This document shows, piece by piece, positions 12,943 through 61,786 of a DNA stretch of 64,000 nt (its first letter is position 1; every line of letters starts with the position of its first letter). A program made the translations under genes and the position numbers. The stretch is from Monocercomonoides exilis PA203 (taxonomy: Eukaryota > Protista > Preaxostyla), in assembly GCA_001643675.2 (NCBI GenBank), contig LSRY02000017.1, positions 1,116,001-1,180,000 on the forward strand. The letters run 5' to 3'. Under the pieces are notes generated by a model that was not told the DNA's origin, did not search any database, and worked only from the letters and a program-made list of their open reading frames with translations.

Positions 12943-15900
12943 ATGGTGAGGTGCTCCACCAGCATAAAAACTGCATTCCATTTTGCTGCATTGTTGTTGC
13001 TGGTTGCTCGCATCTGCAGTTGCAGAGGCATTGAAGAAATGCAAATTCAACAAATATGCGATGAGGAGATGCAGAAAGGCGAGATCAACATATCAGATGA
13101 AAAAGTAACGAATAGCAATAATTATCCCATTCGAAGGGAAGTGATTGGGAATGCAGCTGGCAACCGGTTGTGTTGTGCTGAAACAAGTCTTGTTATCGTC
13201 AACAGCACGTTGTGCGTGAGCCACCTCACCATGGTGCCTCTCAGCGGCTGTGCGTTTGTCACTGCCCACAAGCGCTCAGCTGCCACCATTTTCTCCTCTG
13301 CCTGCCAAATCCACACACACCACAATCACAATCACAAGCACCCCCCACTCTTCCTCTCTGCACACAGCTCTCTCTCACTCACGAACTTCTCCCTCCTTAT
13401 CCCTCAACCGGCCATCCTCTCCTCCCCCCTCTTCTCCACCCCAAATTATCTCTTCTCTTCTTCCCACTCCCCAGTCTCCACCTCCTTCTTCATCTCCCAC
13501 TCCTCTTTCTCCTCTTTCGTCTCCCTTCATCAGCCCTTCCTTTTTTCCCCTTCTTCCCCTCTCCACCCCCAAATCCACCTCAATCTCCATCTCTCAAGCA
13601 CACTCTTCTCCAATATCTCTTCTCTCTCACCACATTTAGCACAAACACCACTTTCCTCACACTCACTCACTCCATTCACCGCCACAACCACAATCACCAC
13701 AAACACCACACACCAGCACAACTCATTCACCACAACCACTGCCACCAACACCAATTCAAACACAATCCCCTTCCACTCTCTTCACTCATCAATTTCCATT
13801 CACTCAACCATCTTCATCCACACTCACAACCCAGTTGATGGTGCCATCCTCCCTTCCATCAACAGTCCATCCACTTCCCTTTCAGCCTTCAACTCTTCTT
13901 TCCTCCACCAAACTCGCTCTTTAGCAAATGCTGCTAAAGTGTATATCGGAAACGAAACTGATAGAAAAATACCAGGAAGATTGTCTGATTTTGATCTGAG
14001 CAGCCATTGCTTCGAATGGTGTGAATGGGAAGATTCAGACAGTGGAGATGATTGGGGTGGTGCGCTTCTAGTAAATTGCACAAATGCTAATCTCACAATT
14101 ACTTCTTGTTCATTCAATAAATGTTCATCCAATGGAGAAGGAGGAGCGTTATATTGTTATTTTTTGTCAAAAGTTAACATTTTAAAATCAAATTTCACAA
14201 ACTGTTCAGCATATCATGGAGGGGCAGCTGAAGTGTACGGACCGCAATCCAATTGTGTTTGGACGTTTGTAGAAAATAAAGTGGAAAGTTGCTCAATTAC
14301 AAATTGGTGTGGAACTGGTTGGTATTTTGCTCTTGGAAATACTCCAACAAACGGTCAATTCTTGTTCACCAAATGCAACTGCATTGCAAACTCGGGCTAC
14401 GATTCTTCTGGTGCTCTTACATTTCGTTATCCTCCAAATAATAAACCGAGACTATTTTTAATTAATGACTGCCTATTTATAAAAAACAAATTGAAAAATA
14501 CATCTTCATCTTATGGAGGTGCTGCAATCTACTGTAATCTAACTTTCACTTGGATGAGCGGAATGAAATTCATCACTTTTTGCTTCTTTGATGGTAATTC
14601 CGCTTCTAGTGGCAAAGGAAATGATGTGTTCTTCAGCGGAAGTGCAATCACCCAATCTCCTTTCCAGCAATGTGGTTCAACAACTCCAACAAAAAGAGTG
14701 TGGAATAATGGAACTGCTGACAACGCTGAATATAATTGCTGGCTACCAATCATCAACCAGAACAAAATCGTTGCAAATGGTGGAAATGATGTCGATGCCT
14801 GTGGCAAAACACAGCAAAGCCCATGTGCCACCGTAGAGTATGCACTCGGATGCATTGCTCCCTTCAGCGATGCCTCCCTCACTCTCCTCCTCTCCACTTT
14901 CACTCCAGCTCAGACACTCACGTTCCGTGCACCAAATACAAAAATCACAGGAAATAGCACAACTGCCACCACCATCGCCTCCAGTGGAATTCCCCAACCA
15001 ACTTATTCTTCCTCTCCATCATTTTTATCATCCTCTTCACCAGATCCATCTATCTCTTCTGCCCTCTTCGCCCAAACCCAGGGATCACTTACAGTCTCTG
15101 CCCTCGCCATCTCCCACAACTCCACAAATCAAATCACCACCATCCTCTTCCACCTCTCCGAAAACTCCCCTTCCCTCAACCTCAACACAACCACCATCAC
15201 CGGAACAACCTCCATAACAATAAAAACTCCGCTCTTCTTCCTCACTGCTGGCTCCCTCACCCTCAACCACACAGCAATCACCAGTTTCACCCTCAACAGC
15301 CAAAGCATCTTCCACCTCACCTCCCTCACAGCACCCCTCACCCTCAACTCCTCCAACATCACCCACATCACCTCCACAGCCACCCCCGCCAGCTGTGTCC
15401 TCTCCTCTGCCACTTCCCCTGCCCTCTCCCTCTCCCTCACCAACTGCACCATGACCAATATCGCCTCTCGACAGCTGAACCAAAATACTGCCACAGATGG
15501 CGGATGCATCTCATTCGCCTCATCCGCCTCTGACAATGCATTTTCGGTGAGCAACACCACCTTCTCCAGCTGCTGTGTGAGTGAGGATGCCAGCGCTGGA
15601 GGAAGAGGAGGAGGAATATATTTGGATTGCAGTTTGAATGAAGGAGGATTTCAACTTTCGTCAATATCGTTTTCTGGATGCTCGGCAACGATTGGGAAGA
15701 ACATGTTTGTAAAGAGCAGCAATCTGGTGAATACTGTGAATACAGAGCGTCTTGCAATTGTTAACACAGATTACGAGGATGATGGGAATGCATTTGTTGG
15801 GGAAGATGGGAAATATGGAGAAATGGATCTCCGAGTGTTTCTTGTTTCTTTGAAGTGGATGGTTGTGTCTGTGTCGAAGGATGGGCATGACACATTGGGA

Positions 15901-18900
15901 TGTGGGAGTGAAATATTCCCATGTCAATCGATGAAAAGTGGAATTGACCACATTGACAGAAGCGAGGCAGAAGGAGAAAGGAAAGTGAATGTGAGAGATG
16001 ATGGAACAATGGAAGATGCTTGTTTGTTTTCAAAAGCCATTGTGATTGATGGGTGTGTGAATGAGGGAGATGATGTGAAGCACAGACTTGTTCATTTTGA
16101 GGAGACTATCAAAGGGGATTCTGCATCGTCTTCATCTGTTATTTCATCAAGCAACTCGCTCATTTTGTTGTCTTTGAAGTTGCAGGTTCCAAGTCAATTT
16201 GTGTCAAACATGAATTCGTTGATTTCATCGAGTGGGATTCTTCAACTCAAAAACTGTTCCTTTGAAAATCAGTCATTAGATATCATTCAATACTCTTTGA
16301 TAACCACAACAAGTGGAAGTTGCACATTGAAAGAATGCAGTTTGACAGATTGTTCATTTGTCGAATGCCCATTGGAGATGAATTCTTCTGTTTTTATTGA
16401 AGACTGCAACTTAATAAATATTGTGAACACCGGAAGCAGTGAAGGAGGTTCAGCAAAAGTGATTTTGAAAGGGAATGAAAAACTGGAGATCAAATCGACA
16501 AATGCATCTTCTTGTTCGCTTTTAACAACAAATGGAAAAGGAGGATTCTTGTATCTTGATTGTCAAAATTGTTTGAATGAAACACCATTTCTTTTGGAAG
16601 GTGTAACATTTGAGAACAACAAAGCAGATATTGGAAAGAATATGTTCATTTTGGGAAAGGATTTCAACAGTTCTGTGACGAATGACTCATTCAAGTTTGA
16701 TTACTCATCAATGAAGGATGATAAGACTTTGTTTGTAGGAAGTGACAATTTTTATCAAGAAAAGGATTTATTCATGTTTCTGATTACATACAGCTCATTT
16801 GAGATATTTATCTCATTGAGTGGATTTGATGTGGAACGCTGTGGAAGTGAGGAAGAACCATGCTTCACAATGTGGAAAGGGATGGAAAACATGGAAAAGG
16901 GAAATGAAATGAAAACAATTCAGATTGAAGGATCAACAATTATTCGAGATTCATTCAACGTGTCCAATTATCAGATCAAAAAGAGTGTAAAGATGGGAGA
17001 AGAAGATACAAAAGCAATATTGAATATTGAAAAGGCAATTGAAACTCAGCTGGAATATTTCATGGAAAATGATAATCATCTTGAATTGACAAATATCCTA
17101 CTCCAACTGAAATCTGGATTTGACAATTCAGCCAAAACAATTATTTCAAACAAAGAAGGAGATTTAGTGATAACTGGATGTGCATTCCATTCAGAGGCTG
17201 GAGTGAACAATGGATTTGATTGTGTGTTTGTGGATGCGATTGGAGGCGGTGTGGAAGTGAATGATTTGTCGATGGAATCGTGCAATGTTGGAAACAGTAT
17301 ATTTACCATTCGCGATTCTGGAGTTGTTTGCCATTTGGTGAATGTTCGAGTGGAATTGTTGAATGAAAGTGGAGGATGCATTTTGTCAATCAAGAAATCT
17401 GAGTCAGGATCAAAATTGAAAAACAAAAATGAGAAAATAAATCTTCAAATTGAGAAATCATCATTTTCAGGAGTAAAGAGAAGTGACAATGGAGCGAGCA
17501 TTTTGGAGTCTGCGAGTGAGAATAAGATTTGTTTGGTTGTGAATGAGAGTAACATCACAGAAGACAAAGCAGATACAAGTGAAAAAGGAGGGGCGATATT
17601 CTTCACATTGGGTGCATCTGGATCAATGAAGATGATTGACTCAACAATCAGCCATTGCGGCTGCAGCGAAAGCAGGGGAAGAGGAGGAGGAGTTCATCTG
17701 GCAACAAAGGAAAGAGGAGAATTGGATTTCGCATTTGTGGGGATGAAGTTCAGTGCAAACACAGCAAGTGTGGGGAATGATATTTTCATTGAATGCTTTA
17801 ACATCACATCGCAGATCAATGAAACCCAGTTTCGATTTGATCTTCGAGAAGGCCATTACACCAGAATGAATGCGATATATGGAATTGATAGTTGTGAGCA
17901 CACAGATGATACAGATCTGATTGATTTTGTGACGATCCATCAGAGCGATACAATTGTTGTGAGCAGCGTGAATGGATCGAATGAGAGACAATGTGGAACA
18001 AGCACACTTCCATGTGCTTCGATTGATTATGGACTGATGCATCTGACTTCAGATTTCATGAGCCAAATGATTGTTATCGGAGAGAGCGTGATTGGTGAAG
18101 AGATAAATCTGAAAGAAATGGGCCTAAGTTCGAAGAACAGAGAGATGTGTGAAGTTGAATTTGAAACAGAGATTGAAAAAACAAAGGAATCTTTGATGAA
18201 AACAACTGGAACAGTTTCATTGCTGAGAGTGAACTTTGTGTTTGATCCAAATTTCATCTCTTCTCACAAATCATTGATATCTCCAGAGGGAGGGATTCTT
18301 GAAGTGATGAATTGCTCATTCGCTTCAAAACAATTGACAGAAGAAGGAAGTATTTCTTTTACTGAAATTCCATTTCACATTATTAATGTAGAAAAAGGAG
18401 AATTACAACTTGATGGATGCTCAATATCAAATCTCATTCTTCATGAATCAGCGTTATATCTTTCATCTTCTCTTCCATCAGTGATTTATTTATTAACGAT
18501 TTGCAATTCAACAATTAAAACTTCTTTGATAGATCTTAATGAATGTGGACAATTAACAATTAAAGATTTCAAAACAGAAAATATCACTGTTGAAGGAAAT
18601 GAAGAATCATTGATATCTTGCTTGACAATGAAAAAGACGATGCAGTTAACGAATTGCACAATGGGCGGAGTCAGTACAAACAATGCAAAGGGGAAATTGA
18701 TGAAATTGGAGGATTGTTTGGATGTGAAAATGGACAGTTGCATTTTCGAAGGAAATTCAAAAGAAAGAAATGAGAAGAAGTTGAATATGGAAGAAGAGAT
18801 ATGCAGATGGGATGGATCTTTAGTGGATATTGTGAAGAGTTCTGTGGTGATGAAAGACACAACAATCTCGAATTCACCAAAAGGTGGAATATCAATGAGT

Positions 18901-20805
18901 GGAGGAAATGTGATTATTGAAATGGGGTTGTTTGAGAATAATAATCCATCAATTGAAAATTATCCATCGTTGAGAAGAAATATCATTTGTTCAGATTCAG
19001 GAACATTGAATGTGATGAGTTTGAAAGGAGGAGATGGATTGGAAAGAAACACATCTCTTTGGATGCTGAATGGTGGGTGCAACTTTGAAGGGATTGTTTC
19101 AGAAAGGGATTCATCATTCTTCATTCCTGTGCTGGAAAGTGTGGAAGCAAAAGAAGAAACTGGTAGAATGAAACTGACATTCAAAGGAATGCTTCTTGTT
19201 CCATGCAATCTATCATTCGCAGTTGTGAAGCGAAAGGGAGAAGAGAAAGAGATTGAAAAACATGATTTTGATTCAAATGGGTTTTTGTCAGAAAGAGAAG
19301 CAGAAGGAAGTGCGGGAAAAGATCTCATCAACAGTTGTGGAGACGAAATAGAAGTGAGTGCATGTATTTTATTTGGGAATGCTTATTCTCCTTCATCAAC
19401 AAATCCATTTGTTCTGAAAAATGCAAGTGAAACAAAGGGAAATGGAGATGGAAGGATTGTTGAAGGAGGAAAAGATCAAAAATCATTTTGGCTGATCATT
19501 GTGATCATCATGGCAATCATTCTCATGATTGTGCTTATTGTGTCTGTTGTTTTGGCTGTTCGATGGAGAAAACAAAAGCGAAGAACAGAGGAGTTGGAAA
19601 TCGTTGTGGAAGACACAGTGAGGAAGGATCCGAAGTTGATTGAGATGACAACGATGGAGATGTCTCCCGAGGAGCAATGGCGAAGGGCGGAGAGGGAAGC
19701 TGAAAAGAAGAATGAAGAGAGGATCAAGAAGAGGGTGTATGCGAAAAGCTTGGGACACTCAGAGTCATCAGAGCATCTTCTCTCTGAGAGTGGATCAACT
19801 GAATACATTCTGGGAAGAGACTCAGATAAGATTCCTGATTGGGCATTGGAAAAGGAGGAGGAAGAGACGAGAAAGAGAACTCCATCGCCATCTATTTCAT
19901 CAACTTCATCCACTTCAACGACAGACACAGAATCCACATTTGTTCGTGGGGAGGACTTGTGTCCAACCACATCATCAATGTCGAATCTGGTGGATGCAAT
20001 GGCCTGCTCCTCGCCTCATGAGAAGCTGATTGTGGATTTAAGAGATTCATTGTTCATGCTTCTTCATGGAAGAAATGAGAAAAAAGAGATGGCAATTGGG
20101 AGTTTGCAGGAGAGGGAGCAGACAGCTTCCCAAATCCTGTTCTGGGTGGCAAATCTCGCACTTCACTCCTTTGATGAGATGGAAAATTTTCTTCAATCTC
20201 TTTCCAATCTCAGTCCTCATATTGTTCTATTCTCAGAACACATGGTCATTTGTATTGTGATGCACTCCGACTTTTCTTCAGATTCAGATTCATCCTCAAC
20301 CTCGTCATCGACCGTTGTGACATCTGCCAGTGACAATGATGATGATGATTCTCTTCCTTCATCAGCGTTTGAGGATGATGATGATTTCAAAAAAGAGTGT
20401 TTGAGGTGGAAGGCACCTGAGCTACTGATGAACAAGAAGATGGGAGCGACAAAGAAGTCGGTGGTGTTTTCGATTGGGATGATGGCGTGGGAGTGTCTGA
20501 CGCTCCAGATCCCGTTTGGGGAGTATGAGGCGGAGGTGGCGGGGCAGAAGATTGCGAATGGGGAGAGGCCTGGGCCAGAGGAGCTTGAGGGATGCGAGCT
20601 GAGCAAGGGGGTGAAAGCGTGCTTGTCGCAGAATGGAGAGGAGAGGCCAGGGCTGATGGATGTGAAGCGGGAGCTGTTTGGGCACTTCCCGGCCGGGGCT
20701 GTGATGGTCACAGTGACTGATGCGATTGGGTTGGAGGTTGGGTCGGGGGATAGAGATGGAAGTGGGGATAGTGAAGCTGAGAGTGGAGATTCGTTGATTC
20801 GATGA
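12943..20805 (+). CDS. Giant single-exon type-I membrane protein (2620 aa): signal peptide, Cys/GGA-rich repeat ectodomain (4 modules), TM, kinase-like (pseudokinase) tail
   Basis: Uninterrupted 7.8-kb ORF. N-terminal FHFAALLLLVARIC; recurrent CGxxxxPC and GGxIxL...FxxNxAxxGxxxF motifs; TM SFWLIIVIIMAIILMIVLIVSVVLAV (~19483-19560); kinase C-lobe motifs RWKAPEL, KSVVFSIGMMAWECLTLQIPF, CL...ERP. Confidence 0.9.
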   Translation: MVRCSTSIKTAFHFAALLLLVARICSCRGIEEMQIQQICDEEMQKGEINISDEKVTNSNNYPIRREVIGNAAGNRLCCAETSLVIVNSTLCVSHLTMVPLSGCAFVTAHKRSAATIFSSACQIHTHHNHNHKHPPLFLSAHSSLSLTNFSLLIPQPAILSSPLFSTPNYLFSSSHSPVSTSFFISHSSFSSFVSLHQPFLFSPSSPLHPQIHLNLHLSSTLFSNISSLSPHLAQTPLSSHSLTPFTATTTITTNTTHQHNSFTTTTATNTNSNTIPFHSLHSSISIHSTIFIHTHNPVDGAILPSINSPSTSLSAFNSSFLHQTRSLANAAKVYIGNETDRKIPGRLSDFDLSSHCFEWCEWEDSDSGDDWGGALLVNCTNANLTITSCSFNKCSSNGEGGALYCYFLSKVNILKSNFTNCSAYHGGAAEVYGPQSNCVWTFVENKVESCSITNWCGTGWYFALGNTPTNGQFLFTKCNCIANSGYDSSGALTFRYPPNNKPRLFLINDCLFIKNKLKNTSSSYGGAAIYCNLTFTWMSGMKFITFCFFDGNSASSGKGNDVFFSGSAITQSPFQQCGSTTPTKRVWNNGTADNAEYNCWLPIINQNKIVANGGNDVDACGKTQQSPCATVEYALGCIAPFSDASLTLLLSTFTPAQTLTFRAPNTKITGNSTTATTIASSGIPQPTYSSSPSFLSSSSPDPSISSALFAQTQGSLTVSALAISHNSTNQITTILFHLSENSPSLNLNTTTITGTTSITIKTPLFFLTAGSLTLNHTAITSFTLNSQSIFHLTSLTAPLTLNSSNITHITSTATPASCVLSSATSPALSLSLTNCTMTNIASRQLNQNTATDGGCISFASSASDNAFSVSNTTFSSCCVSEDASAGGRGGGIYLDCSLNEGGFQLSSISFSGCSATIGKNMFVKSSNLVNTVNTERLAIVNTDYEDDGNAFVGEDGKYGEMDLRVFLVSLKWMVVSVSKDGHDTLGCGSEIFPCQSMKSGIDHIDRSEAEGERKVNVRDDGTMEDACLFSKAIVIDGCVNEGDDVKHRLVHFEETIKGDSASSSSVISSSNSLILLSLKLQVPSQFVSNMNSLISSSGILQLKNCSFENQSLDIIQYSLITTTSGSCTLKECSLTDCSFVECPLEMNSSVFIEDCNLINIVNTGSSEGGSAKVILKGNEKLEIKSTNASSCSLLTTNGKGGFLYLDCQNCLNETPFLLEGVTFENNKADIGKNMFILGKDFNSSVTNDSFKFDYSSMKDDKTLFVGSDNFYQEKDLFMFLITYSSFEIFISLSGFDVERCGSEEEPCFTMWKGMENMEKGNEMKTIQIEGSTIIRDSFNVSNYQIKKSVKMGEEDTKAILNIEKAIETQLEYFMENDNHLELTNILLQLKSGFDNSAKTIISNKEGDLVITGCAFHSEAGVNNGFDCVFVDAIGGGVEVNDLSMESCNVGNSIFTIRDSGVVCHLVNVRVELLNESGGCILSIKKSESGSKLKNKNEKINLQIEKSSFSGVKRSDNGASILESASENKICLVVNESNITEDKADTSEKGGAIFFTLGASGSMKMIDSTISHCGCSESRGRGGGVHLATKERGELDFAFVGMKFSANTASVGNDIFIECFNITSQINETQFRFDLREGHYTRMNAIYGIDSCEHTDDTDLIDFVTIHQSDTIVVSSVNGSNERQCGTSTLPCASIDYGLMHLTSDFMSQMIVIGESVIGEEINLKEMGLSSKNREMCEVEFETEIEKTKESLMKTTGTVSLLRVNFVFDPNFISSHKSLISPEGGILEVMNCSFASKQLTEEGSISFTEIPFHIINVEKGELQLDGCSISNLILHESALYLSSSLPSVIYLLTICNSTIKTSLIDLNECGQLTIKDFKTENITVEGNEESLISCLTMKKTMQLTNCTMGGVSTNNAKGKLMKLEDCLDVKMDSCIFEGNSKERNEKKLNMEEEICRWDGSLVDIVKSSVVMKDTTISNSPKGGISMSGGNVIIEMGLFENNNPSIENYPSLRRNIICSDSGTLNVMSLKGGDGLERNTSLWMLNGGCNFEGIVSERDSSFFIPVLESVEAKEETGRMKLTFKGMLLVPCNLSFAVVKRKGEEKEIEKHDFDSNGFLSEREAEGSAGKDLINSCGDEIEVSACILFGNAYSPSSTNPFVLKNASETKGNGDGRIVEGGKDQKSFWLIIVIIMAIILMIVLIVSVVLAVRWRKQKRRTEELEIVVEDTVRKDPKLIEMTTMEMSPEEQWRRAEREAEKKNEERIKKRVYAKSLGHSESSEHLLSESGSTEYILGRDSDKIPDWALEKEEEETRKRTPSPSISSTSSTSTTDTESTFVRGEDLCPTTSSMSNLVDAMACSSPHEKLIVDLRDSLFMLLHGRNEKKEMAIGSLQEREQTASQILFWVANLALHSFDEMENFLQSLSNLSPHIVLFSEHMVICIVMHSDFSSDSDSSSTSSSTVVTSASDNDDDDSLPSSAFEDDDDFKKECLRWKAPELLMNKKMGATKKSVVFSIGMMAWECLTLQIPFGEYEAEVAGQKIANGERPGPEELEGCELSKGVKACLSQNGEERPGLMDVKRELFGHFPAGAVMVTVTDAIGLEVGSGDRDGSGDSEAESGDSLIR

Positions 20806-22206
20806 GTGGAAACGGTCTGAATGTTTCGAGGTATTTGATAAAGACATTTGTGCATTTTTTTTCCTTTTGAAGAGTTCAGTTGGAAGTTAAAACAGAAGGA
20901 TTTACTTTGGAAATGGAGTGAAAAGCAAATTGAATGAGTCTGATGTTTTGAATGTGTGTTCATGAATTTTGGATTGAATCTTTCGAGACTTGTGGTCTTC
21001 TGAAAGATTGCAGAAAATGCGAATTGGATTGGCAAACAAATTGTTAGAGCTGTGTTTTATTATTATTATAATTATTATAATTATTAATTTTATTTTGTTT
21101 CATATTGACTTTGTGATTTTTTTGCTGAGCACCATTTTCAATCATTGTGACAATTGGGGAGGAGCAATAATTGAATGCTGTTCTTTCATTGAAGTTCTCT
21201 TTCACTTTCTTCTTTTTGTATTTCACATATTCCTTTTTTTTTTCATGGTCGCAATCTGTTTTTGTTGGTTGGGGAAGAAATTTCATTTTTTCGTTTTGTT
21301 TGTTTTTGTTTTATTCTTATTTTAATACCAGCAACGATTTGAAGATATTCTAATTTTTTGATAATTCATTTTGTATATCCATGTTTTTGTGAAAATTTTT
21401 GGTAATGATAGAAATTTTTGTATTTTGTCTGCATGTTTTATTCGAAGCAGATTTCTCAATATTTTTTTGAGATTGAACAAACAGAAATTATGAATATTTA
21501 AACAAAAAAGAGTTTTGGATGATATAAGTGTTAGAAGAGAAAATACACCATTTTTCATCTTTTTTCCTTTCTTGAATTTCGCAATTATCCCATGATTCCA
21601 ACGTTGAAACAAAATGTCCTTTGAGTTTGTTGAGCCAAAAACTTTATATTTGCGTGAAAAGTTTATGAATAGAATCTTGAAATGTTTCAAAATTCTTGCA
21701 TTTATGAAAAAAATAACAACTGTTCGAAACATTTTCTCAGTCTTATCATGATAAGTCTAACATTACCATGTTTAACAATACAGAAATTTCTTGAAACTGA
21801 GAAAAATATTGGTAAAAAATGAGATTAACAAAATTCATTAAGCAAAATTATTGGTTCCATATGATACCAAAAAAATAAGCCAAATTCTGTACATACATGT
21901 CATTTAACAGCATGTTAATATTAACAACCGAGCGTTTTATATTCTATTGAAAAGACAGTTCCTTCTTGAACAATAATAATTTATCATGTTTGAATTTTCC
22001 ATTCCAAAAAGTTGAAAAAACTTTTTTTCGTAGTTTAAAAAGATGCAACAATTTGAATTGTATGAAATATTGATATAACATCAAAAATTTAGAATATTTT
22101 CGAAAAAATAATAAGAATTGCACACCCTTAACAAATACAATATATTTTATTTTTTTTCATCGTTGCGAAAGGGAACAAATTTTGTGTTACATTAGACGAA
22201 CATAAG

Positions 22207-46658: not shown

Positions 46659-46752
46659 TTTTATTTATAGATATTTGCTAAAAAATGTTCCTTTGATCTG
46701 AGATGATGAACAATTATACTTCTGATCAAATCATTGTAGCTGGTTTTGAGCG

Positions 46753-49700: not shown

Positions 49701-51358
49701 AAGAAAATAACCTTCCTGATTCATCATCATCATCCTCCTCCTCCTCCTCTTCTTCTTCTTCTTCTTTTCCTTCTTCTGTTGCTGCTTCTGTTGCAGATAT
49801 ATCCAGTTCTGTTCTCTCTGCCACGGGGCAGCTGGTGATTGAAGACTCAACGACTTCACAAACTCTTGTCCCGCCTTCTGTGCCTATTGGCGGCAGTACT
49901 CAGACTTCTTCTGCAAAGGGAGATGGAAATACAAGCTCTTCTTCATCATCTTCTTCCTCCTCTTCTTCCTCTTCTTCTTCCTCTTCCTCAACTCCATCTG
50001 CCAGCGACGACATCGCCCTCTCCTCTGTCCCTGCCTCCTCTCTGATGTACATGCTCACCCCTCGTTCTCCACTTGATGCTCCATCCAAAAAGATCCGCTC
50101 AACCATCGCTAAGACAGGTGCTACACCAACTGCGTCAAGTCCTCTTGTTTCTCTCTCTGCGTCTGCGTCGGCTGCTGCCATTGCTTCTTCTTCTTCTTCT
50201 TCTTCTTTTTCTTCTTCTCCCCACCCGACTGCCCCTGCGCTGCACTCCAGGCAGAACTCACAGACGCCGTCCAGAAACTCCCTCCAGCCAGCTCTCAACA
50301 CACTCACCACACTCGCTTCTTCTGTCACAAGTTCATCGTCTTCTTCTTTCTCTTCCTCTTCTTCTTCCTCCTCTTCTTCATCGTCTTCTCTTTCTCTTTC
50401 TCCTTCTCCTCTTCCCATTCAAGCCAACACTGCCGCAACACCTGCTGTGTCATTTGTGCGCTCCACACTCTCCTCTTCTGCAATGGCTGCTCCTGTCATC
50501 CCCATCTCCTCTGTCTCCTCCACCTCTTCTTTAGCTGCCTCTCTTTCATCTGCCATCGCCCCGTCCTCGCCAGCCCCTGCCTCCATCCCCATTTCACAAC
50601 CGGCTGCTCCTTATTCTCCTTCTGTGAGTCCTCTTCCTTCTTCCTCTTTTGCTCTTTCTCTTTCTCCTTCTCCTTCACAAGCACCTTCATCAACATCTTC
50701 TTCCCGATCTGTTAATTCTGATACAGGCGCGCTTCTGCTGTCGTTTGCGCGGTTCAACAGAAGAGAAGGCGGAGCACAATCTGCCCAGCCGTCTTCAGCT
50801 TCGCCTCTTTCTCTGTCGAGTTCACAGACTGCTTTTGGGAGAGCGTCTTCACGTTCTTCGTCTCCTTCTTCTTCTGCTTCTTCTATTGCTTCTTCCTCTG
50901 TTTCATCAGTTTCTCCTTCCACAGCTTCTTCTTCTTCTTCTTCTATTTTATCTCCTCCTCCAGTCACCCAGCTCATTGCCTCTCCTATTCAACATCATTC
51001 TCCTCCTCATTTCACACCTTCATCTCCTCAGATAGCTCCTCCAAAGCAACCACAACTGCCTTCTTCTTCTCCTTCTCCTCCTTCTCCTCCTTCTAATTCA
51101 TTACAGATTTCTTCTTCTTCTTCTTCTTCTGTCTGTTCTGTTGCCCAGCCGAATGCGCTGAGTGAGATGGAGGCGCAACACAGGCAGATGATGGCTGCAA
51201 TGGAGATGAGGATGAAGCAGATGGAAGAAGAACTCATCCAGAGCCTAGAAAATGAAGAAGATGAGGAAGAAGAAGAAGAAGACAATGATAATGGAAATGG
51301 AAATGGAAATGGAGAAGGTGAGGGCGAGGGTAAGAGGAAAGATATTAGTGATAAATAG
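46753..51358 (+). CDS. Mucolipin/TRPML-like cation channel with a very long Ser-rich C-terminal tail, 5 exons
   Basis: N-terminal MSPFQKWKKYRIFPWK (mucolipin-like) and pore LFALMNGDVVLEVF; S6 LFFITVVLNIFISIIEESY. Four GT-AG introns keep the frame, and the last exon starts at ~48003. Confidence 0.85.
48983..51130 (+). repeat. TCN trinucleotide / poly-Ser low-complexity region inside the channel gene
   Basis: Long TCT/TCC/TCA runs, e.g. ~48995-49125 and ~49340-49465. Confidence 0.9.

Positions 51359-51793: not shown

Positions 51794-51844
<51 letters not shown>
51794..51844. repeat. Poly(T) tract (~51 nt)
   Basis: Directly visible homopolymer. Confidence 0.95.
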
Positions 51845-52849
51845 CTAACAAAGAAAAAAGAGTTGAAAATCCGAATAATGACATTTTGATTTTATTGTCT
51901 AATTACAAAAAATTATATTTTTGTAAATACTTCAAATTTAGATTCAAGTTTTTTTAAAACGAATAACATTTAATACCGAGAAGAGTCATGCAAAGAATAA
52001 GATATTATTTAAAATGTATTTTTTGTGATTTTGAAACATTTTTGAAAACTGTTTATCTTCCTTTAACAAAAGCGATAATTGTTATATAACCGTGATCGAA
52101 AAGAATATATTAAAAGGTGATTTTGTTGTTAATAAGAAGTTTATGCTTATTGAAATTATTTCGGAAATAATTTTTTTATTGTTGTTGCTTTGAGTGCATT
52201 CTGCTACTTTCAATGCCGCATTCTCATGAAAGAAGAATTAGAATTATTTATGAAGCAATTCTTTTACTGTTTACCTTCGAAATGTGCATAATTAACTTCT
52301 GATACACCGAAATATAGGTATTTGTTTTATACAAATTGCATTTTAACTGGAACTTTTTTGCATTATTTAACAATTTTTTTATGATTAAAAGAATTTTATA
52401 AACAAATAAAAAATTATTTTTCACCAAGTACTATCAATAAATCGCAACTTTAGTGGCTTTCTTGTTTTCAAAAGGAAGTTGCAAAGTTGTGCTTTATTTT
52501 TTGTTTTTCCTTTCAGTTATTGGATTGAACAATAATGATGCAAAATTATGAAACATAAAATGTGGTTTGATATAACTGTTTTTATCATTTAAAATAATCT
52601 CATTTATCTCTTTTAGCAAAATACAACATGATGAATGGATTTTAAAAATAAAAGGGAATCAAAACAGATATTTGAAGAATGGAAACTTTGAAATTGGTTT
52701 CATCATTTTACATAGAAATACTTTGAAACTTTTTTAATTGCACTTTATGTGGTTTTAAAGCAACATTAATATAACACATTCTAAATTTTTTGATGGCAAT
52801 GCTGATCAAAATTTGATCTTGATAATATTTTCTGGGGAAAGGAACTTCC

Positions 52850-55800
52850 ATGCTTGTTATCGTTGCTGCATGCCTCATAACTCAAATTATTTACGCAAAC
52901 TACCATTTGACAAGATACGATGATTATTCCGTTTCTTTATTGAAAAAGTACCATTTCTCAAATGATAAATGCAGCAATAACAATTGGAATGGACCTTTGA
53001 GATTTCATGGAAATATTTCATATCAAAGTGATAAATTGAATATCAGCAGCACCATTAATGGAAGAATCTGTTTGAATAACTCAACGGTAAGTCTTTTTTC
53101 TATATGTCATTTTCAACACCAGGGCAAAGAAATATTCTGGTTAAAAAAATGTTCAAGAATTAATGCTTACAGTTGCTCAATCTCACTATTAGGAAAAAAC
53201 TCGAATTGTGTATTTTCCTGTCTAGGTGGCTTTATTAATTTGAATAATATTTCAATAATCTCACTTTCAAGAATGAACTACTTTGCCGGAATGGTTTCGT
53301 CCATACTCAAAAATCGTCATTCACATGATGTTTTGTGGATTTCTCTGAAATTCTGTTTGTTCGATTCATTGAATATTGACAGCTCATCGTGCTTTCTTGG
53401 CAAGTCTGAAGGAGTTTTTTCAAACATAGATAGCTGTTCTTTTTGTAATATATCTAGAAATACAAGTTCAAATTACAAAAGAAAATTGAGCAATTCATGC
53501 AATTTCTTCTCTGTCTTTGTCAAATGTTCAATATTTAACAGAATTTTAGACGCCGATTACAGTTCAGTTTATTCTCTTCCGACTCAAACGTTTTATAGTT
53601 TCAATTCTTCTTTCTTCGCTTCAAAAGAGATTCACACTCCATCCAATGGATCTCTAAATGAATTTTCTACTGGAACTGTGGTTGCTGAATCAACAGTTTT
53701 TTCTTCTATAACTGCGTCAAGAATGGGTTTGGCAATGTATGTTAGTGGGAATGCCACTTTGAATATTTCAAAGTGTGTTTTCTTGGATTTGAACTCAACA
53801 ATTGAAAGTGGTCAAGGTGGAGCTGTTAAACAAGAAGGTAGCGGAAGGCACGAAGTGACTGAAAGCAACTTTTCAAACTGTTTTTCAACTCAGTGGGGTG
53901 GTGGGATCCGTGTTGAATCAGATGGAGTTCAAATTATATCATATTGTATTTTTGAAAACTGTCAATCAAAACATTATTGCTGTGTTTGTTGGACTCCAAA
54001 AGCAAGTGGTTCAATATTTCAAAATAATAAATTGGTTCTGTCAAAAGGAAATGTGCCAGATTCTGAATCTGGTACACTTGGAATAAGGGAGCCATCAGTA
54101 AAGATTTTAATAAGTAATTGCCTTTTTTGGAAGAATCATATGCCAACAAGTTCAGCAGGGATTGCATTCACGATTGGATGTCGGACAAATGAGGTTGCTG
54201 AAATATCATTCTGCTTTTTTGATAACAATACAGTGGATAATGATTCTAAAGGTTGTGACATTTTTGCTCAACCATTCTTTATTTCAACTGTTATCTCTTC
54301 GGCCTTTCGATTGTGTTACTCGTCAAGCATTTCTGAAAAAAGAGTAGTAATTGGCACAACGAATTACCCTGAGATACTACCAAATATTCCAAATTCATTT
54401 ACTGAGTTGTATGTTGTTGGTGATGGATTAGATCACGATTCATGTGGAATGGAGCTGTTTCCATGCAAAACCATTTCAAAAGCAATAGAACTTAGAACAA
54501 TTCACTCAATTTCAGTTGGAAAAGGGAACTTCAAAGAAGGTGAAATTGAAGTGGGAAATTTTACAATTAGAATGAACGGTGATTCAAAAAATTCCAGTTT
54601 CATTATGGCAAAGAGCATTTCAAGAGGATTTTGGCTATTTCATGTTATGTGTGGAAAGCTTGAAGCGACTGATTATACAATAATTCACAGTTCTTCTGAA
54701 AGTCATTCAGATTCGTCACTTGTTGTTATCAATGGAAATGGAAATGTATCTTTTGTTGATTGCATTTTTACTGCGGAGGATCACCAAAAAAGAGTATTTG
54801 AGGCTCCTCAAATGAAGATAGAAGGAGGAGAATTAAATTTCGTAAATGTTGTTGTCAAGAATTTTCATTCAAATGAAGCATTCATTTTGTTAACATCGTG
54901 TTCGTGCATGCTCTTTTCAAATGTGAATGCTAGAGAGATACATAGGACAAGTGGAAATGGAAGTTTTGCCGAAATGGAAATCAGTTCTTCCTCAAAAGTT
55001 GCAATGAACAATGCAACAATTGAAAATTGTGCCTGTGATGATGGAAATGGAGGAGGAGCATTTATTTTGATTAATAATAATGGTGAGTTAACAATTGGCA
55101 ACGAATCGTTGGTCTCATTTGCATCATGTAGCGTTCCAGGTGATGATGAGAAAAAAGGAAAGGGAGGGGGCCTTTTTTTGAGTTGCGGAGATGAAGGAAA
55201 TAACTTTTTAATGAATTCTATTGAGTACAACAATTGTTTTGGCTGGATTGGAAAAAGTCTTTTTGTATGCTCTAAGAATTTGGGCTTAGTAATAAATGAG
55301 ATCCATTTTCCAAAATGGACATGGTTTGAAAACAGTACGGAGAATGAATCAACTGGTTTCGAAGATGATAATAAAAGGCTTGCAATACCGCTCTATTTGT
55401 TCTTTGTGAACCCATTTCCAACGCCAGCATTCATTGGAGGAGGGATGAGCGTTGACCATAGTGGGTGTGGATTTGAAAAGTTTCCATGTGCAACAATTAA
55501 TCATGCTGTTAACCTTAGGTTTGGAAGTTTGAAAAGAGAAATTGCACTAAATGAAGGATTTACTCTGTCTGAAACATTGGAGATGAAAGTGAATGAATGG
55601 ATTGTTTCATGCTTGAAAAAAGACACTGTAATTTCTGTGGACCTATTATCTATCCAGAATGTAACAACAGCAATAAACATTAAAAATAATACCATCATGA
55701 ACAATATCAGTTTTAGTATAAATAAATTATCAATTTCTTTAATAATGATTATCACTTGTTCAAGCGGAACTCTTTATCTGAATAACTGCACAGCTGGCCT

Positions 55801-58800
55801 AAGCGCAGAATTTGAAATAGGCAATGAGAGAGATTTTTGTTTCATTTGTATCATAAATGGATCGTTAGTGATGAATCAATTTGCAACAAACGGTTTCATA
55901 CAAACAGATCAACGTTCATTAATCGAAAGGAACTCCTTTTTAGGATGTGTAGAATGTATAGATTGCTCTTTTGCAGGGATCAAGAAGTTAAGAGGAAATG
56001 GAGGCTGCATCACGAGCGAATGCTGCTTGATTGAAAATTTTGTGAATGAAAGAACTATAGCAATAGAAGGATGCAATTTTAGTGAATGTTATTCTGGAGA
56101 AGATAATGCCAAAGGAGGAGGAATTTATATTGAACTTTGTGCAAATGAAAAGGCCATTATTAACGGTACGGGAGCGTTTGATGGATGTTTCGCGGGAAAT
56201 GATGAAAAGAAAGGCGGTAAAGGAGGAGGTATTATGGTAAAAATTATGGATACAGAAAATCTAATATTCAAAGTCAACAAAGGAGTATCATTTTCAAAAG
56301 AAATTACAAACAAGGCAAAATATGGGAAAGATATTTTTGTTGAATGCAATCGAGGAATATTCCTTGAACAAGTTGTTAACAAGACATCATTTGGTTTCCA
56401 TGATTCTTTTAAAATTCCGTTTGATGAAAAAATGGAAAGTGGAAGTGAGGATGGAAATGAGGCTTTTATTATTCCATTATTTGTGTTTTTAAATCAAATA
56501 GATTCAAAAATTGTTGCAAATGGGAGTGGTGTGGATTATCCTCATTGTGGATTTTTGTCATTTCCTTGCCATTCTATTTCTTATTGCTTTGATGAAAGAA
56601 TAACCCACGATTTAAGTGAGATAGACGTTATGGCACCTTCATCAATTTATCACGAGTTATCAATCCCTTTATATCCGATTTGTATTAAATCAACAAAATT
56701 CATTTCTGGAGAAGAGAAAATGGAAGTGAATGTGACGGATGAAGGAGAAGCAACAAAAGACAGCTTCATCGAATGTTCTTCTTCTTTTCTTATTGAGTCT
56801 CTGGCACTTGTGCTTAAGGATTCTTTTAATCCTCAAAGATGTGCATTTATTCATTCCATATCTTCGATCAAAATGATAGATTGTTCGTTTAATTTAGTTT
56901 CTGTTGATGTTGTTCCACAGATATTTTTCAGTTTGCTTTTTGTAACTGGAGGAGATATTACATTGCAGGAGTTAGTCATAAATGAGGAGATTGTATTCTT
57001 GCAGGCTTCTCCAATCACAATTGAAAACGGAAACAAAATTGAAATCAAAATGAGTCAGATTTTCGATTTAAAAAGAGAATCAGGAAATGGGGGTTGTTTG
57101 TATGTCAAAGGGAAGAGTGGAATTGAGCCTTGCTTGTTAATAAGCAATTGCTCTATGAAATCAATTTGTGAAGGCGGAAATAAACTTAAGGGAGGAGGTA
57201 TCTTCATTTGTTTGGAGAAAGATGTGTTTTTTGAGATGAATGATGTGATGTTTTCTTGTTGCAAGGTACCAAAAGATGGTGGGGAAGAAAAAGGAAGAGG
57301 TGTAGGAGGAGGACTATTTCTTGATATTTCTGATGAAGTGAACATATTTGAACTTAAAAAGTTGAATTTTGAAAATTGTGATGCATGGAAAGGTAAACAA
57401 GTGTTTTTGTCAGCAAAGAATCTGAAACCAATTGTAAATAAGGATCATTTCGTGTGGGAATTAAAAGCTGATGAATTGAAAAAAATGGATGAAATGAATG
57501 GATGGGAAAGATCCACATCTGATGAGCAATTTGTAATTCCTCTTGTTGTATATTTGTGGAATAACTTCAGTAACACTGGATTTATTGATGGTGAAAGAGG
57601 AAACGATTTTAGTGAATGTGGATACAAAGAAGTTCCTTGTCAAACAGTCGATAAACTTATCCACCTTCGATATTCTCATTCCCTTTCACATCCTTCAGCT
57701 TCATCTTATATACGTATAAAAAACTTTTCATCTGTCAATTTTGAAATTTCTTTCGAAGATTATCCACCATTAAATGCAAATCAATCTGTTTCATTTGTGG
57801 GAGAAATAAGCCAAACTTCTGTATTGATAAGTGAGGGGGATGCGAATTCTGAATCAATGATTTCATCTTCAATTATTCTCTCTTTTATTAACATTTCATT
57901 CATCCTTCCTGAAACATTTTTATATCACTATTCATTGATTCAATCGTCAGCAAGTTCTTCACAAACGTCTGTATCATCATCTTTTGTTGAGCTCAAGCTC
58001 ATTAATATTTCGTTTCAATCTAATTTTTCATCTCAAAAAATCAACTACACCATTATTGAAGTTGAAGACGGAAATTTACTCGTTGAAGATTGTACTTTTT
58101 CATTTTCAATTTTCCAGTTTCCATTTATTCATCTTTCTCCAAGTGTCGACGAGATCTTGCTGCTCAAACTATCTGTTTCTTATTCAAATATTTCAAGCAG
58201 CAGTATAATTGCCTATTCATTTTCTGATGCAAAGAAAATGGATATGAATTCATTTTATTATTTGCCCGAAGCAACCGATAATTGCGGCTTCTTCAATATT
58301 ACGCAGTCATCTTTTGATAATATTATTCGCACTGAAAAAGGGTCAACAATTATTTGTTTTGATTTGAATCAAAAAATGAAGATCACTATTCAGAATTGCT
58401 CATTCAAAAAATGTGTAAGTGAGATGAGTGAGGAAGGAGGAGCAATGCTTATTCAATTAAATGATAATGAGTGTTTTTTGCATTTGTCATCTTGCTCAGT
58501 TTTTCAATGTGCATGCTCAAAAACTAATGGAAGAGGTGGAGGAATGATGTTTGATTTCTCTAAACTTTATAATCCATCTTCTTCTTCACATTTGCATCTT
58601 CCTCTCAAGTTGGAAAATATCAAATTCATAATCAACGATGCATTTGTTGGAAAAGATGTTTTTATTCTATGTAAATCTATAGAACAGCAGGTCAATGAAA
58701 CTTTATTTTTGCTGGATTATTCTCAAGATTGCTTTAAATCAAACTATTCAATTTGTGGGTCGGATGATATTTCTACGGATGTGGATCTTCTTCCCTTCAT

Positions 58801-61786
58801 CACATTTCTTTTTGCATCCCAAATATTCGTATCTCTCACATCTGTGGACACACGCCAATGTGGATTACAGAATAATCCATGTCGCAGTATTTCGAATGCA
58901 ATTACTCATATTCAACATGAATTATTTAATGCAATTATTATTAATGTGTCTTCCATTCTTCTTTCTCACGCATATATTTCTGATATATCCATCAAATCCA
59001 TTGCAAAAACCCAGGCAATTATCCACTTTAATAATTCAATATCACAAACAGGAAATGAAAAAAGTGTTATTGAAACAACAAATGATTGTGCAGTTGAAAG
59101 ATGTCAATTTTCTTTTGATTTACGTTTTGAAACTGACTTTCCATCAATTTTGCGCCAATTAAATGGATCGTTAGAAATATCAAGCTGTGCTTTTTTAACT
59201 TCTGATCGAGCACTTGTTATTAATTCAACATTAATAGAAATTGATAGTGGAGAGTTGAACATTGAGAAACTTTTGCTGGCGATGATCAATGTTACCCAGA
59301 GTTTATTTTTGCTTCGAGCTGAATCAGTCATAAGGATCGAAAATCTAAAAATAAATTCTGTTTTCTCAAATCGTGATTCCTTTTTTTTAGAAAGAGGAGC
59401 GCAAGCTTCATTTGAAAAAATGTTTGTTGAAAATTGCACAACTGACTCTGGCAGTATTATATATGTGATTAATGGAAGTGACGAGTTAACTGAGAAAGGA
59501 AAAGAAACAAATTATGGATGTTTCAATACGACCATATCTTCTTTCACCGATATATATGTTTCAGGTTTAGGGAAAAGTGTAATCGACATGCGGACAAATG
59601 AAATGCCAATAATCGTTTCAAATTGTTCATTTCAAGATTGTTCCTCAAATAGAATGAAGGGAAGCATCGTGCAATTAACTGATTGTCATAATGTGACAAT
59701 TCAGCAGTGTTATTTTGATCATTTGAAAACAAATTTCAATAAGCCAAATGATAATTCAAAACAAAGACAAATAAATGAAGTTTGCCGATGGAACGGATCA
59801 GCAGTGGATGCAACGAACAGTGAATTAACATTTAAGGATACTACCATCGCAAATTTTAGAGACGGTGGATTATCATTATCCACTGGCACTATGACAATCG
59901 AGAAAGGGGAGTTTTTGAGCAACAATCCATTCATTGAAAAATATCCATCAGTGAGAAGAAACATCATTTGTTCAGATTCTGGAACATTGACCATTTCCAG
60001 CTTGAAAGGTGGAGATGGAGTGATGCTAAATTCTTCGGTTTGGATTTTGGATGGTGGGTGCACTCTCGGAGGGATCGCAGGAGAAAGGGAATCGCCTTTC
60101 TTCATTCCCAAATTGGAAGACGTTTCTGCGAATGAGAATGGCAGCAACATTGTTATGAAATTCAATGGAAAGCTTCTTCTTCCATGTGATTTGTCATTCA
60201 GACTTTTGTATAAAACAGGGGATGTGGAGTTGGTTGAGACATATCCTTTTGAGGAAGACAGTTTTGTATCAGAAACTGAAGTGATTGGAACAATTCAATC
60301 AGATAATATTTCAAAGATTGCAGATGAAACAGAGGTGTCTGTGATGATAGTGTTTGGAAAGCAATTGGCTTCCACTCCTTCACAGATTCTGAAGAACAAA
60401 AGCGAATCTCGGATAAATGGAAATGAAAGGATTGTTGAAGGAGGAAAAGAACAAAAATCATTTTGGCCGATCATTGTGATCATCATGGCAATCATTCTCA
60501 TGATTGTGCTCATTGTATCAATAATTGCTACAGTTCGATGGAGAAAACAAAAGAGAAGAACAGAGGAATTGGAAGTGATTGTGGAAGACACAGTGAGGAA
60601 GGATCCGAAGGCATTTGAGATGGTGACGATGGAGATGTCTCTAGAGGAGCAGTGGAGGAGAGCAGAGAGGGAAGCTGAAAAGAAGAATGAAGAAAAGATA
60701 AAGAAGAGAGTTTATGAGAAAAGCTTGGGGCATTCAGAATCATCAGAACATTTGCTGAGCGAAAGTGGATCGACTGAATACATTCTGGGAAAAGATTCAG
60801 ACAAGATTCCAGATTGGGCATTTGAAAAGGTTGATGAAAAGGAAGAAGAAGAAGAAGAGACAAGAAAGAGAACACTTTCTCCTTCCATTTCATCAACTTC
60901 AACAACAGACTCAGATTCCACTTTTGTTCGAGGGGAGGATCTGTGTCCAACCACATCATCCATGTCGAACTTGGTGGATGCGATGGCATGTTCTTCGCCT
61001 CATGAGAAGCTGATTGTGGACTTGAGGGATTCGCTGTTCATGTTGCTGCATGGAAGGAATGAGAAGAAAGAGATGGCAATAGGAAGTTTGCAGGAAAGAG
61101 AGCAAACAGCTTCCCAGATCCTGTTCTGGGTGGCTAATCTTGCGCTCCACTCATTTGATGAAATGGAAAATTCTCTTCAATCTCTTGCCAATCTGAGTCC
61201 GCACATTGTGTTGTTCTCAGAACATATGGTCATTTGTATTGTGATGCACTCCGACTTCTCATCTGACCATGATTCAGATTCTTCGTCTATTTCTTCATCA
61301 ACTGTTGTCTCATCCGCCAGTGATGATGATGATGACTCTCTTCCCTCATCAGCTTTTGAGGATGAGGATGACTTAAGGAAAGAGTGTTTGAGGTGGAAGG
61401 CGCCAGAGCTGCTGATGAACAAGAAGATGGGTGCAACAAAGGAGTCAGTGGCATTCTCAATTGGGATGATGCTGTGGGAGTGTCTGACACTCCAGCTCCC
61501 TTTTGGAGACTATCCGGCAGAGGTGTCAGGGCAGAAGATAGTGAATGGTGAAAGACCGGACCTAAGAAAAGTGTTGGAATCTTCATACACAGATGTGCTG
61601 CATCGCACTTTTTCTCCTCAGCCAGACAGCCGTACAACACTGATTGAGATGAAAAGAGAGTTTATTCAGCGTTTCCCAGCAGGTGCTGTGATGCTCACAA
61701 TCTCGGATGCCATTGATTTCGAGAACGAAAGCGAAGACATGGGAAGTGATGTTATAGACTCAATACCTATGTCAAATGGCAGTTGA
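52850..61786 (+). CDS. Second giant single-exon receptor-like paralogue (2978 aa; 5 ectodomain modules, TM, pseudokinase tail)
   Basis: Signal peptide MLVIVAACLITQIIYA; five CGxxxxPC modules; TM SFWPIIVIIMAIILMIVLIVSIIATV (~60458-60535). The tail is nearly identical to that of 12943-20805. Confidence 0.9.
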   Translation: MLVIVAACLITQIIYANYHLTRYDDYSVSLLKKYHFSNDKCSNNNWNGPLRFHGNISYQSDKLNISSTINGRICLNNSTVSLFSICHFQHQGKEIFWLKKCSRINAYSCSISLLGKNSNCVFSCLGGFINLNNISIISLSRMNYFAGMVSSILKNRHSHDVLWISLKFCLFDSLNIDSSSCFLGKSEGVFSNIDSCSFCNISRNTSSNYKRKLSNSCNFFSVFVKCSIFNRILDADYSSVYSLPTQTFYSFNSSFFASKEIHTPSNGSLNEFSTGTVVAESTVFSSITASRMGLAMYVSGNATLNISKCVFLDLNSTIESGQGGAVKQEGSGRHEVTESNFSNCFSTQWGGGIRVESDGVQIISYCIFENCQSKHYCCVCWTPKASGSIFQNNKLVLSKGNVPDSESGTLGIREPSVKILISNCLFWKNHMPTSSAGIAFTIGCRTNEVAEISFCFFDNNTVDNDSKGCDIFAQPFFISTVISSAFRLCYSSSISEKRVVIGTTNYPEILPNIPNSFTELYVVGDGLDHDSCGMELFPCKTISKAIELRTIHSISVGKGNFKEGEIEVGNFTIRMNGDSKNSSFIMAKSISRGFWLFHVMCGKLEATDYTIIHSSSESHSDSSLVVINGNGNVSFVDCIFTAEDHQKRVFEAPQMKIEGGELNFVNVVVKNFHSNEAFILLTSCSCMLFSNVNAREIHRTSGNGSFAEMEISSSSKVAMNNATIENCACDDGNGGGAFILINNNGELTIGNESLVSFASCSVPGDDEKKGKGGGLFLSCGDEGNNFLMNSIEYNNCFGWIGKSLFVCSKNLGLVINEIHFPKWTWFENSTENESTGFEDDNKRLAIPLYLFFVNPFPTPAFIGGGMSVDHSGCGFEKFPCATINHAVNLRFGSLKREIALNEGFTLSETLEMKVNEWIVSCLKKDTVISVDLLSIQNVTTAINIKNNTIMNNISFSINKLSISLIMIITCSSGTLYLNNCTAGLSAEFEIGNERDFCFICIINGSLVMNQFATNGFIQTDQRSLIERNSFLGCVECIDCSFAGIKKLRGNGGCITSECCLIENFVNERTIAIEGCNFSECYSGEDNAKGGGIYIELCANEKAIINGTGAFDGCFAGNDEKKGGKGGGIMVKIMDTENLIFKVNKGVSFSKEITNKAKYGKDIFVECNRGIFLEQVVNKTSFGFHDSFKIPFDEKMESGSEDGNEAFIIPLFVFLNQIDSKIVANGSGVDYPHCGFLSFPCHSISYCFDERITHDLSEIDVMAPSSIYHELSIPLYPICIKSTKFISGEEKMEVNVTDEGEATKDSFIECSSSFLIESLALVLKDSFNPQRCAFIHSISSIKMIDCSFNLVSVDVVPQIFFSLLFVTGGDITLQELVINEEIVFLQASPITIENGNKIEIKMSQIFDLKRESGNGGCLYVKGKSGIEPCLLISNCSMKSICEGGNKLKGGGIFICLEKDVFFEMNDVMFSCCKVPKDGGEEKGRGVGGGLFLDISDEVNIFELKKLNFENCDAWKGKQVFLSAKNLKPIVNKDHFVWELKADELKKMDEMNGWERSTSDEQFVIPLVVYLWNNFSNTGFIDGERGNDFSECGYKEVPCQTVDKLIHLRYSHSLSHPSASSYIRIKNFSSVNFEISFEDYPPLNANQSVSFVGEISQTSVLISEGDANSESMISSSIILSFINISFILPETFLYHYSLIQSSASSSQTSVSSSFVELKLINISFQSNFSSQKINYTIIEVEDGNLLVEDCTFSFSIFQFPFIHLSPSVDEILLLKLSVSYSNISSSSIIAYSFSDAKKMDMNSFYYLPEATDNCGFFNITQSSFDNIIRTEKGSTIICFDLNQKMKITIQNCSFKKCVSEMSEEGGAMLIQLNDNECFLHLSSCSVFQCACSKTNGRGGGMMFDFSKLYNPSSSSHLHLPLKLENIKFIINDAFVGKDVFILCKSIEQQVNETLFLLDYSQDCFKSNYSICGSDDISTDVDLLPFITFLFASQIFVSLTSVDTRQCGLQNNPCRSISNAITHIQHELFNAIIINVSSILLSHAYISDISIKSIAKTQAIIHFNNSISQTGNEKSVIETTNDCAVERCQFSFDLRFETDFPSILRQLNGSLEISSCAFLTSDRALVINSTLIEIDSGELNIEKLLLAMINVTQSLFLLRAESVIRIENLKINSVFSNRDSFFLERGAQASFEKMFVENCTTDSGSIIYVINGSDELTEKGKETNYGCFNTTISSFTDIYVSGLGKSVIDMRTNEMPIIVSNCSFQDCSSNRMKGSIVQLTDCHNVTIQQCYFDHLKTNFNKPNDNSKQRQINEVCRWNGSAVDATNSELTFKDTTIANFRDGGLSLSTGTMTIEKGEFLSNNPFIEKYPSVRRNIICSDSGTLTISSLKGGDGVMLNSSVWILDGGCTLGGIAGERESPFFIPKLEDVSANENGSNIVMKFNGKLLLPCDLSFRLLYKTGDVELVETYPFEEDSFVSETEVIGTIQSDNISKIADETEVSVMIVFGKQLASTPSQILKNKSESRINGNERIVEGGKEQKSFWPIIVIIMAIILMIVLIVSIIATVRWRKQKRRTEELEVIVEDTVRKDPKAFEMVTMEMSLEEQWRRAEREAEKKNEEKIKKRVYEKSLGHSESSEHLLSESGSTEYILGKDSDKIPDWAFEKVDEKEEEEEETRKRTLSPSISSTSTTDSDSTFVRGEDLCPTTSSMSNLVDAMACSSPHEKLIVDLRDSLFMLLHGRNEKKEMAIGSLQEREQTASQILFWVANLALHSFDEMENSLQSLANLSPHIVLFSEHMVICIVMHSDFSSDHDSDSSSISSSTVVSSASDDDDDSLPSSAFEDEDDLRKECLRWKAPELLMNKKMGATKESVAFSIGMMLWECLTLQLPFGDYPAEVSGQKIVNGERPDLRKVLESSYTDVLHRTFSPQPDSRTTLIEMKREFIQRFPAGAVMLTISDAIDFENESEDMGSDVIDSIPMSNGS

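Follow-up and report, generated by a model that had tools for sequence, protein, structure and literature searches.

Giant intronless genes of Monocercomonoides exilis as members of a large predicted beta-helix receptor family with pseudokinase tails

Monocercomonoides exilis is a gut flagellate without mitochondria. One 64-kb stretch of its DNA (64,000 nt, referred to as the window) holds two giant reading frames whose products differ over most of their length and are nearly alike close to the C-terminus. The locus raises the question of what kind of protein is built in this way, how many such genes the genome holds and how the divergent and the shared parts came to be combined.

Genes A and B, the tail relic and their surroundings

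Gene A (12943..20805, + strand) is an uninterrupted, intronless ORF of 2620 aa; its product, a predicted type I membrane protein, joins an A-type ectodomain to a class I pseudokinase tail. A signal-peptide-like hydrophobic N-terminus (12943..13026, +; aa 1–28), recognized from sequence and hydropathy, precedes the ectodomain (13840..19120, +), for which about 5 tandem right-handed beta-helix domains are predicted, the last two of them modelled. The conserved membrane-proximal region (18802..19494, +), where swaps are frequent, runs from the final part of the last beta-helix through a probably Ig-like all-beta domain to a stalk. Hydropathy places the single TM helix at aa 2185 (19495..19563, +), and the class I tail (19564..20802, +) consists of juxtamembrane helices, a conserved Ser/Thr-rich segment and a TKL-like C-lobe. 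Gene B (52850..61786, +), likewise uninterrupted and intronless, encodes 2978 aa with about 6 modules (anchors at aa 532, 873, 1233, 1590 and 2004), a single TM helix at aa 2541 by hydropathy (60470..60538, +) and a class I tail. The membrane topology of both proteins was predicted by hydropathy alone. An initial annotation had described two full-length genes on a common plan, and the uninterrupted ORFs, the one strong TM in each and the hydrophobic N-termini of both agree with that description.

Up to aa 2000 the ectodomains of A and B are 16–39% identical per 100 aa. Identity reaches 54–57% at aa 2001–2200 and 87–93% at aa 2201–2500, the opening 300 aa of the tail; where the C-lobe ends it has dropped to 53%. 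The high similarity that had been reported from the TM onward is therefore present, but its rise begins about 230 aa before the TM. Likewise, the view that ectodomains share only motif skeletons fits A versus B but not the genome at large, where ectodomains of one type are 70–85% identical. The ectodomain of gene B belongs to a rare type whose best paralogues are 27–40% identical. The third copy (tail relic, 5569..6542, +) is interrupted in frame by a stop near 5730 and shifts frame near 6250–6280. It is indeed a relic, but a tail-only one that lacks the full plan attributed to it: TM and ectodomain matches were sought in this interval and neither was found.

Both genes had also been described as intron-free among intron-rich neighbours, which holds for part of the window. 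Neighbours at about 1–2 kb, 22.1–24.2 kb and 44.9–47.6 kb look multi-exon, as judged from broken ORF chains. They include a CHFR-like FHA-RING-CRD-PBZ gene (22.1–24.2 kb) and an Arp3-like gene named by eye (44.9–46.7 kb, −), which lies head-to-head with a mucolipin/polycystin-type channel gene (46750–51358, +; PKD_channel match) that has a very long Ser-rich C-terminal exon. Three other neighbours are single frames. These are a Ser-rich ORF of 17.8 kb and 5937 aa (26458–44271, −) that contains a long charged coiled-coil and has a C-terminus rich in RD/RE, an intronless bacterial-type CoaBC fusion (3003–4298, −; Flavoprotein and DFP Pfam matches), and a hAT-like transposase ORF of 627 aa between the relic and gene A (8331–10214, −), in which the DDE motifs DGG, DG, CxxHxxNL and TRW were seen by eye and Pfam gave no useful match. 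A MITE-like foldback lies 3′ of gene B after a poly-A/AAT run (62345–62724; 380 bp, near-perfect, 187-nt arms 96% identical) and has at least 40 dispersed copies at 75–90% identity among 186 candidates. Upstream of gene A, nested degenerate palindromes (11207–12554; 70–80%, 244-bp periodicity) are probably old foldback elements.

RNA-library contigs at ≥97% identity covered 29–30 of 30 bins over 12801–18700 in 4 runs of one study; these contigs come from an assembled bulk metatranscriptome, so that they record no more than presence and may stem from DNA or close paralogues. No GT-AG joint was seen in them over this interval, and the first bin, mostly 5′ of the ATG, was empty in 3 of the 4 runs.

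Fold of the ectodomain and homology of the tail

Ectodomains of the family are composed of 3–9 modules, mostly 310–430 aa each, and each module is marked by a CG-x5-C anchor. In A, a DUF1565-like cap starts each of the last four domains (anchors at aa 620, 987, 1300 and 1684). An AlphaFold model of A aa 1260–2184, built from 103 sequences (pLDDT 87.5), shows a pair of beta-rich repeat domains and, C-terminal to them, a small all-beta domain. Structural matches of the better-tested domain are right-handed beta-helices at Z 24–25 and 7–13% sequence identity, namely PL6 alginate lyase, phage tailspikes and the adhesin PfbA; the match to VIA has Z 25.4 and rmsd 3.2 Å over 309 residues. The ectodomain has as its atlas neighbours a Preaxostyla cluster together with clusters of the DUF1565, Chlam_PMP, Beta_helix and methanogen adhesin-like kinds, and Pfam returned only sub-threshold beta-helix matches in the A and B ectodomains. 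Based on the model and its matches, the A-type ectodomain is predicted to adopt a right-handed parallel beta-helix (pectin-lyase-like) fold, in line with the beta-helix reading of the initial annotation.

The GGA(I/L) and FxxN motifs had also been likened to those of Pmp-like adhesins. GGA-type motifs are sparse (6–10 per protein in A and B), neither protein has a Chlam_PMP (PF02415) or autotransporter Pfam match, and the chain ends in a TM and a cytoplasmic tail instead of an autotransporter barrel; membership of the chlamydial Pmp family was rejected on these grounds. Distantly related to the ectodomain is a protein of Streblomastix strix (3977 aa) that has one TM and no kinase match; a JGI metagenome scan returned no relative.

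Kinase similarity of the class I tail was confined to the C-lobe in Pfam, PDB sequence and Foldseek searches alike. The tail matches positions 163–258 of PF07714 above the cut-off, finds ILK, TAK1 and BTK among PDB sequences, and aligns over about 95 residues at 2.7–2.9 Å in Foldseek. WxAPE is present in 121 of 122 class I tails, VAIK, HRD and DFG in 0 of 122 each, and GxGxxG in 1 of 122. With the register assigned by eye, the catalytic-loop position is held by an NLSPH-type segment and the activation-loop position by an acidic Ser-rich insert. The segment where an N-lobe would sit is highly conserved, and no N-lobe was modelled there (pLDDT <50, shallow alignment); because the whole tail model is of low confidence (pLDDT 48), this does not prove that the N-lobe is missing. 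By its C-lobe homology and motif content, the class I tail is best described as a putative TK/TKL-derived pseudokinase, which accords with the non-catalytic tail proposed earlier. An active TK/TKL protein kinase was rejected for the 122 class I and 3 class II tails inspected, all of which lack VAIK, HRD and DFG.

Family size, tail classes and exchange between copies

The assembly scanned comprised 82,301,135 bases in 101 contigs. An 11-codon tail motif gave 892 genomic matches against 0 for a control, a lower bound on class I copies, and with about 110 other-tail copies the M. exilis family numbers about 1,000 genes. The large repertoire put forward for testing is thus borne out by at least 892 copies. 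On the contigs listed, motif-bearing copies are spaced about 40–100 kb apart, and some form tail-to-tail inverted pairs. Such pairs, 4–5 kb apart, were noted at G000:C1:2284/7556, C1:75583/80830, C1:189553/194802, C6:727360/731874 and C36:538259/542493. Frames of at least 2400 aa hold 97 of the 131 best copies, and 19 of the 131 have short frames. A rough estimate from mean frame length in this biased sample of best copies gives about 6.7 Mb of family DNA, and one ectodomain module alone has 5134 candidate places.

That a kinase-like family might already be annotated in this genome proved correct. PMC6759080 gives protein tyrosine kinases as the largest M. exilis family, with 332 genes of which 320 are TKL, and PMC8767320 reports that tyrosine-kinase genes overlap unclassified repeats. 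This published family is very probably made up of the same genes as the receptor family described here. The passages of the two papers that we cite do not mention an ectodomain, a TM or a dead kinase, nor do they describe tail classes or recombination, and a literature search for a beta-helix/half-kinase architecture found no description. Our protein sample consisted of the 120 best tail matches, mostly N-truncated public models: all 120 are MONOS_ entries named 'uncharacterized', they carry a PF07714 match only, and 27 of them keep the hydrophobic N-terminus. The full-length A and B ORFs are both missing from the public protein collection.

Searching with the ectodomain of B recovered proteins with other tails. 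MONOS_15565 and MONOS_3818 are 67–82% identical to A over the covered ectodomain and carry a class II tail, a second C-lobe pseudokinase with about 88 copies that passes the PF07714 cut-off. It matches the A tail only in the C-lobe, at 32–35% identity, and the Gly-rich loop, VAIK, HRD and DFG were all absent from the 3 class II tails inspected. MONOS_2314, which shares 70–80% identity with A through most of its ectodomain, carries a class III tail, which has no kinase part and about 22 copies. For one A module the 103 nearest copies were examined, of which 9 share an open frame with a class II tail and 3 with a class III tail. Free assortment predicts 9.0 and 2.3, and since the class II and III counts are lower bounds the fit may be partly chance. 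Eleven further A-type genes, whose frames of about 2300–2400 aa fall some 300 aa short of the others, may have a different tail again. Judged from these sequences, the same ectodomain types are combined with at least three tails, two dead half-kinases and one non-kinase, so the 'constant base' of the initial annotation is too simple. Separately, P0132 (MONOS_785) and P0156 (MONOS_10976) have beta-helix ectodomains on further non-kinase tails; the public MONOS_785 model starts with a class I C-lobe and is probably mis-fused.

We next consider how ectodomains and class I tails are associated. Pairwise module identities sort 122 proteins into 38 ectodomain types, and tail identity is 0.73 both inside and across types. 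The Spearman correlation of tail with ectodomain is 0.04–0.07, against 0.46–0.59 among modules m1, m2 and m3. The tail tree and the m2 tree have 10 of 112 splits in common. In FastTree reconstructions, the tail tree requires 31 changes of type and the m1 tree 7, whereas changes of contig number 31 on the tail tree and 50 on the m1 tree. Pairs with close tails and alien ectodomains lie on one contig in 26 of 31 cases (expected 1; permutation p<0.001; each contig inferred from its listed length).

The same pattern appeared at the DNA level, where we compared 31 loci over about 3.9 kb each (proximal ectodomain, tail and 3′ flank). Identical runs of at least 100 nt occurred in 19 of 48 same-contig pairs versus 1 of 417 cross-contig pairs. 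Gene A contains a recent conversion tract of 789 nt (20014..20802, +) identical to the paralogue G000:C11:1080314; identity is mostly 83–91% on the 5′ side of the tract and about 88% beyond the stop. In the tail-to-tail pair L015/L016, 1397 coding nt and 688 nt of 3′ flank are identical, and the upstream part differs. Silent divergence among A-type genes is greater in the tail (0.47–0.54) than in the proximal ectodomain (0.26–0.35). One module position of A is exchangeable (15640..16365, +; aa 901–1140), with 22–28% identity to four otherwise A-type relatives and about 70–85% in the flanking modules. P0058, P0009 and P0002 are mosaic proteins. In these comparisons tail and ectodomain are decoupled, and tails are exchanged mostly within one contig. 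Two outcomes that would have spoken against the initial annotation, a small copy number and congruent trees free of recombination, were not observed. Free shuffling of all modules was rejected: m1, m2 and m3 remain correlated, and swaps would therefore fall mostly at the membrane-proximal/TM junction, with occasional replacement of single modules.

Possible functions of the repertoire

We propose that A and B are members of a type I membrane receptor/adhesin family of about 1,000 in M. exilis. By sequence or model, the outside is a chain of 3–9 right-handed beta-helix domains, and the class I inside is a strongly conserved C-lobe remnant without the residues for phosphotransfer. Sequence statistics show that dispersed copies, mostly those on one contig, undergo ectopic gene conversion or crossing-over, for which the conserved membrane-proximal, TM and tail DNA supplies the homology. 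Such recombination re-pairs ectodomain types with tails, unrelated tail classes included, and sometimes replaces single modules. Many members may be co-expressed on the cell surface or on a feeding/endocytic membrane, where their ectodomains could bind varied surface glycans of bacteria taken as prey, or gut mucins. The signal might be reported by a non-catalytic scaffold tail common to the members, the tail class choosing the output. A co-expressed surface or phagocytic repertoire for bacterial or host glycans that signals through non-catalytic tails is, on balance, the reading we favour. M. exilis is bacterivorous (PMC12308965). A bolder version, for now tentative, is a two-axis combinatorial system occupying about 8% of the genome, in which dozens of ectodomain types are re-paired by intrachromosomal recombination with several non-catalytic tails, and which would serve, as innate immune repertoires do, to identify bacterial prey or partners from the glycans on their surface.

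Giardia VSP and Plasmodium var are variable outside, constant inside and recombining. Mutually exclusive expression and switching are their defining traits, and their folds are unrelated to those of the M. exilis receptors. A coat of this type, with one member per cell, switching that evades host antibodies and a tail that anchors or recycles the coat, would suit a gut dweller and a very large, recombining, intronless repertoire with mosaics, a variable outside and a constant inside. We consider it unlikely, however. Copies are dispersed along contigs with no cassette or expression site seen, and a strongly conserved signalling-type tail of 400 aa in several classes exceeds the needs of a coat. 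The proximal ectodomain of A-type genes, the part tested, is under purifying selection (omega 0.22–0.35), and RNA contigs show many close paralogues, a weak argument in bulk data.

We give a similarly low probability to a surface-tethered array of lyases or hydrolases that degrades bacterial capsules or mucin, with the tail used for trafficking. Its appeal lies in the top structural matches, which are lyases, polygalacturonases and tailspike depolymerases. These matches are only 7–13% identical, however, the adhesin PfbA scores as high, and a fold in common proves no function. Across 103 aligned segments, G, C, N, Q, F, L and H make up the invariant columns of the helical modules, and an invariant Asp/Glu/Lys/Arg set that could be catalytic is absent. 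The invariant residues look structural, which favours binding over catalysis.

The poorest prospect is a mostly non-adaptive spread of largely redundant copies by a mobile element or segmental duplication: it would account for even dispersal, inverted pairs, relics, the 19 short frames among 131 and the nearby hAT-like transposase and foldback elements, but it is largely refuted by class I tails that are strongly selected as protein (dN/dS 0.05–0.11) at near-saturated silent sites (divergence 0.46–0.61), and the 3′ flanks are shared by same-contig copies only, which indicates no common element end. Neither A nor B contains a transposase or RT domain, and with 3′ flanks unshared across contigs, a mobile element was rejected.

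The proposed receptor repertoire can be set beside known systems. Entamoeba histolytica PATMK, a TMK that may be a pseudokinase, acts in phagocytosis, and the TMKs are likewise an expanded gut-protist family with a signal peptide, an ectodomain, a single TM and a kinase-like tail (PMC2880585, PMC2211552). They differ in their CXXC ectodomains and complete kinase domains, compared with tandem beta-helices, C-lobe-only kinase matches and about 1,000 genes in M. exilis; membership of that family was rejected. Trichomonad Pmp/BspA proteins, also from a metamonad, resemble the M. exilis receptors in GGA/FxxN-type motifs, one TM, demonstrated adhesion and the pairing of one TM-tail with differing ectodomains, but the Pmp tails carry endocytic motifs and no kinase remnant (bioRxiv 10.1101/454884). 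The M. exilis layout of tandem capped domains in chains of 2600–4200 aa also departs from Pmp. Methanogen and bacterial DUF1565 adhesin-like proteins, PfbA, PL6 lyases and tailspikes share the fold and the N-terminal cap motif; they are prokaryotic or phage proteins and have no TM with a pseudokinase tail.

As a mechanism, gene conversion within a multigene family is ordinary; what is unusual is the scale, a tail reduced to the C-lobe and ectodomains shared across tail classes. The reading changes how the largest family in a landmark genome is understood: its 'tyrosine kinases' would be largely dead half-kinase receptors, and the family DNA, by its rough estimate of 6.7 Mb, would form part of the 'unclassified repeats' of M. 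exilis. With this reading the prey selectivity of M. exilis and its failure to grow axenically become testable, and the family supplies a large library of beta-helix candidate binders.
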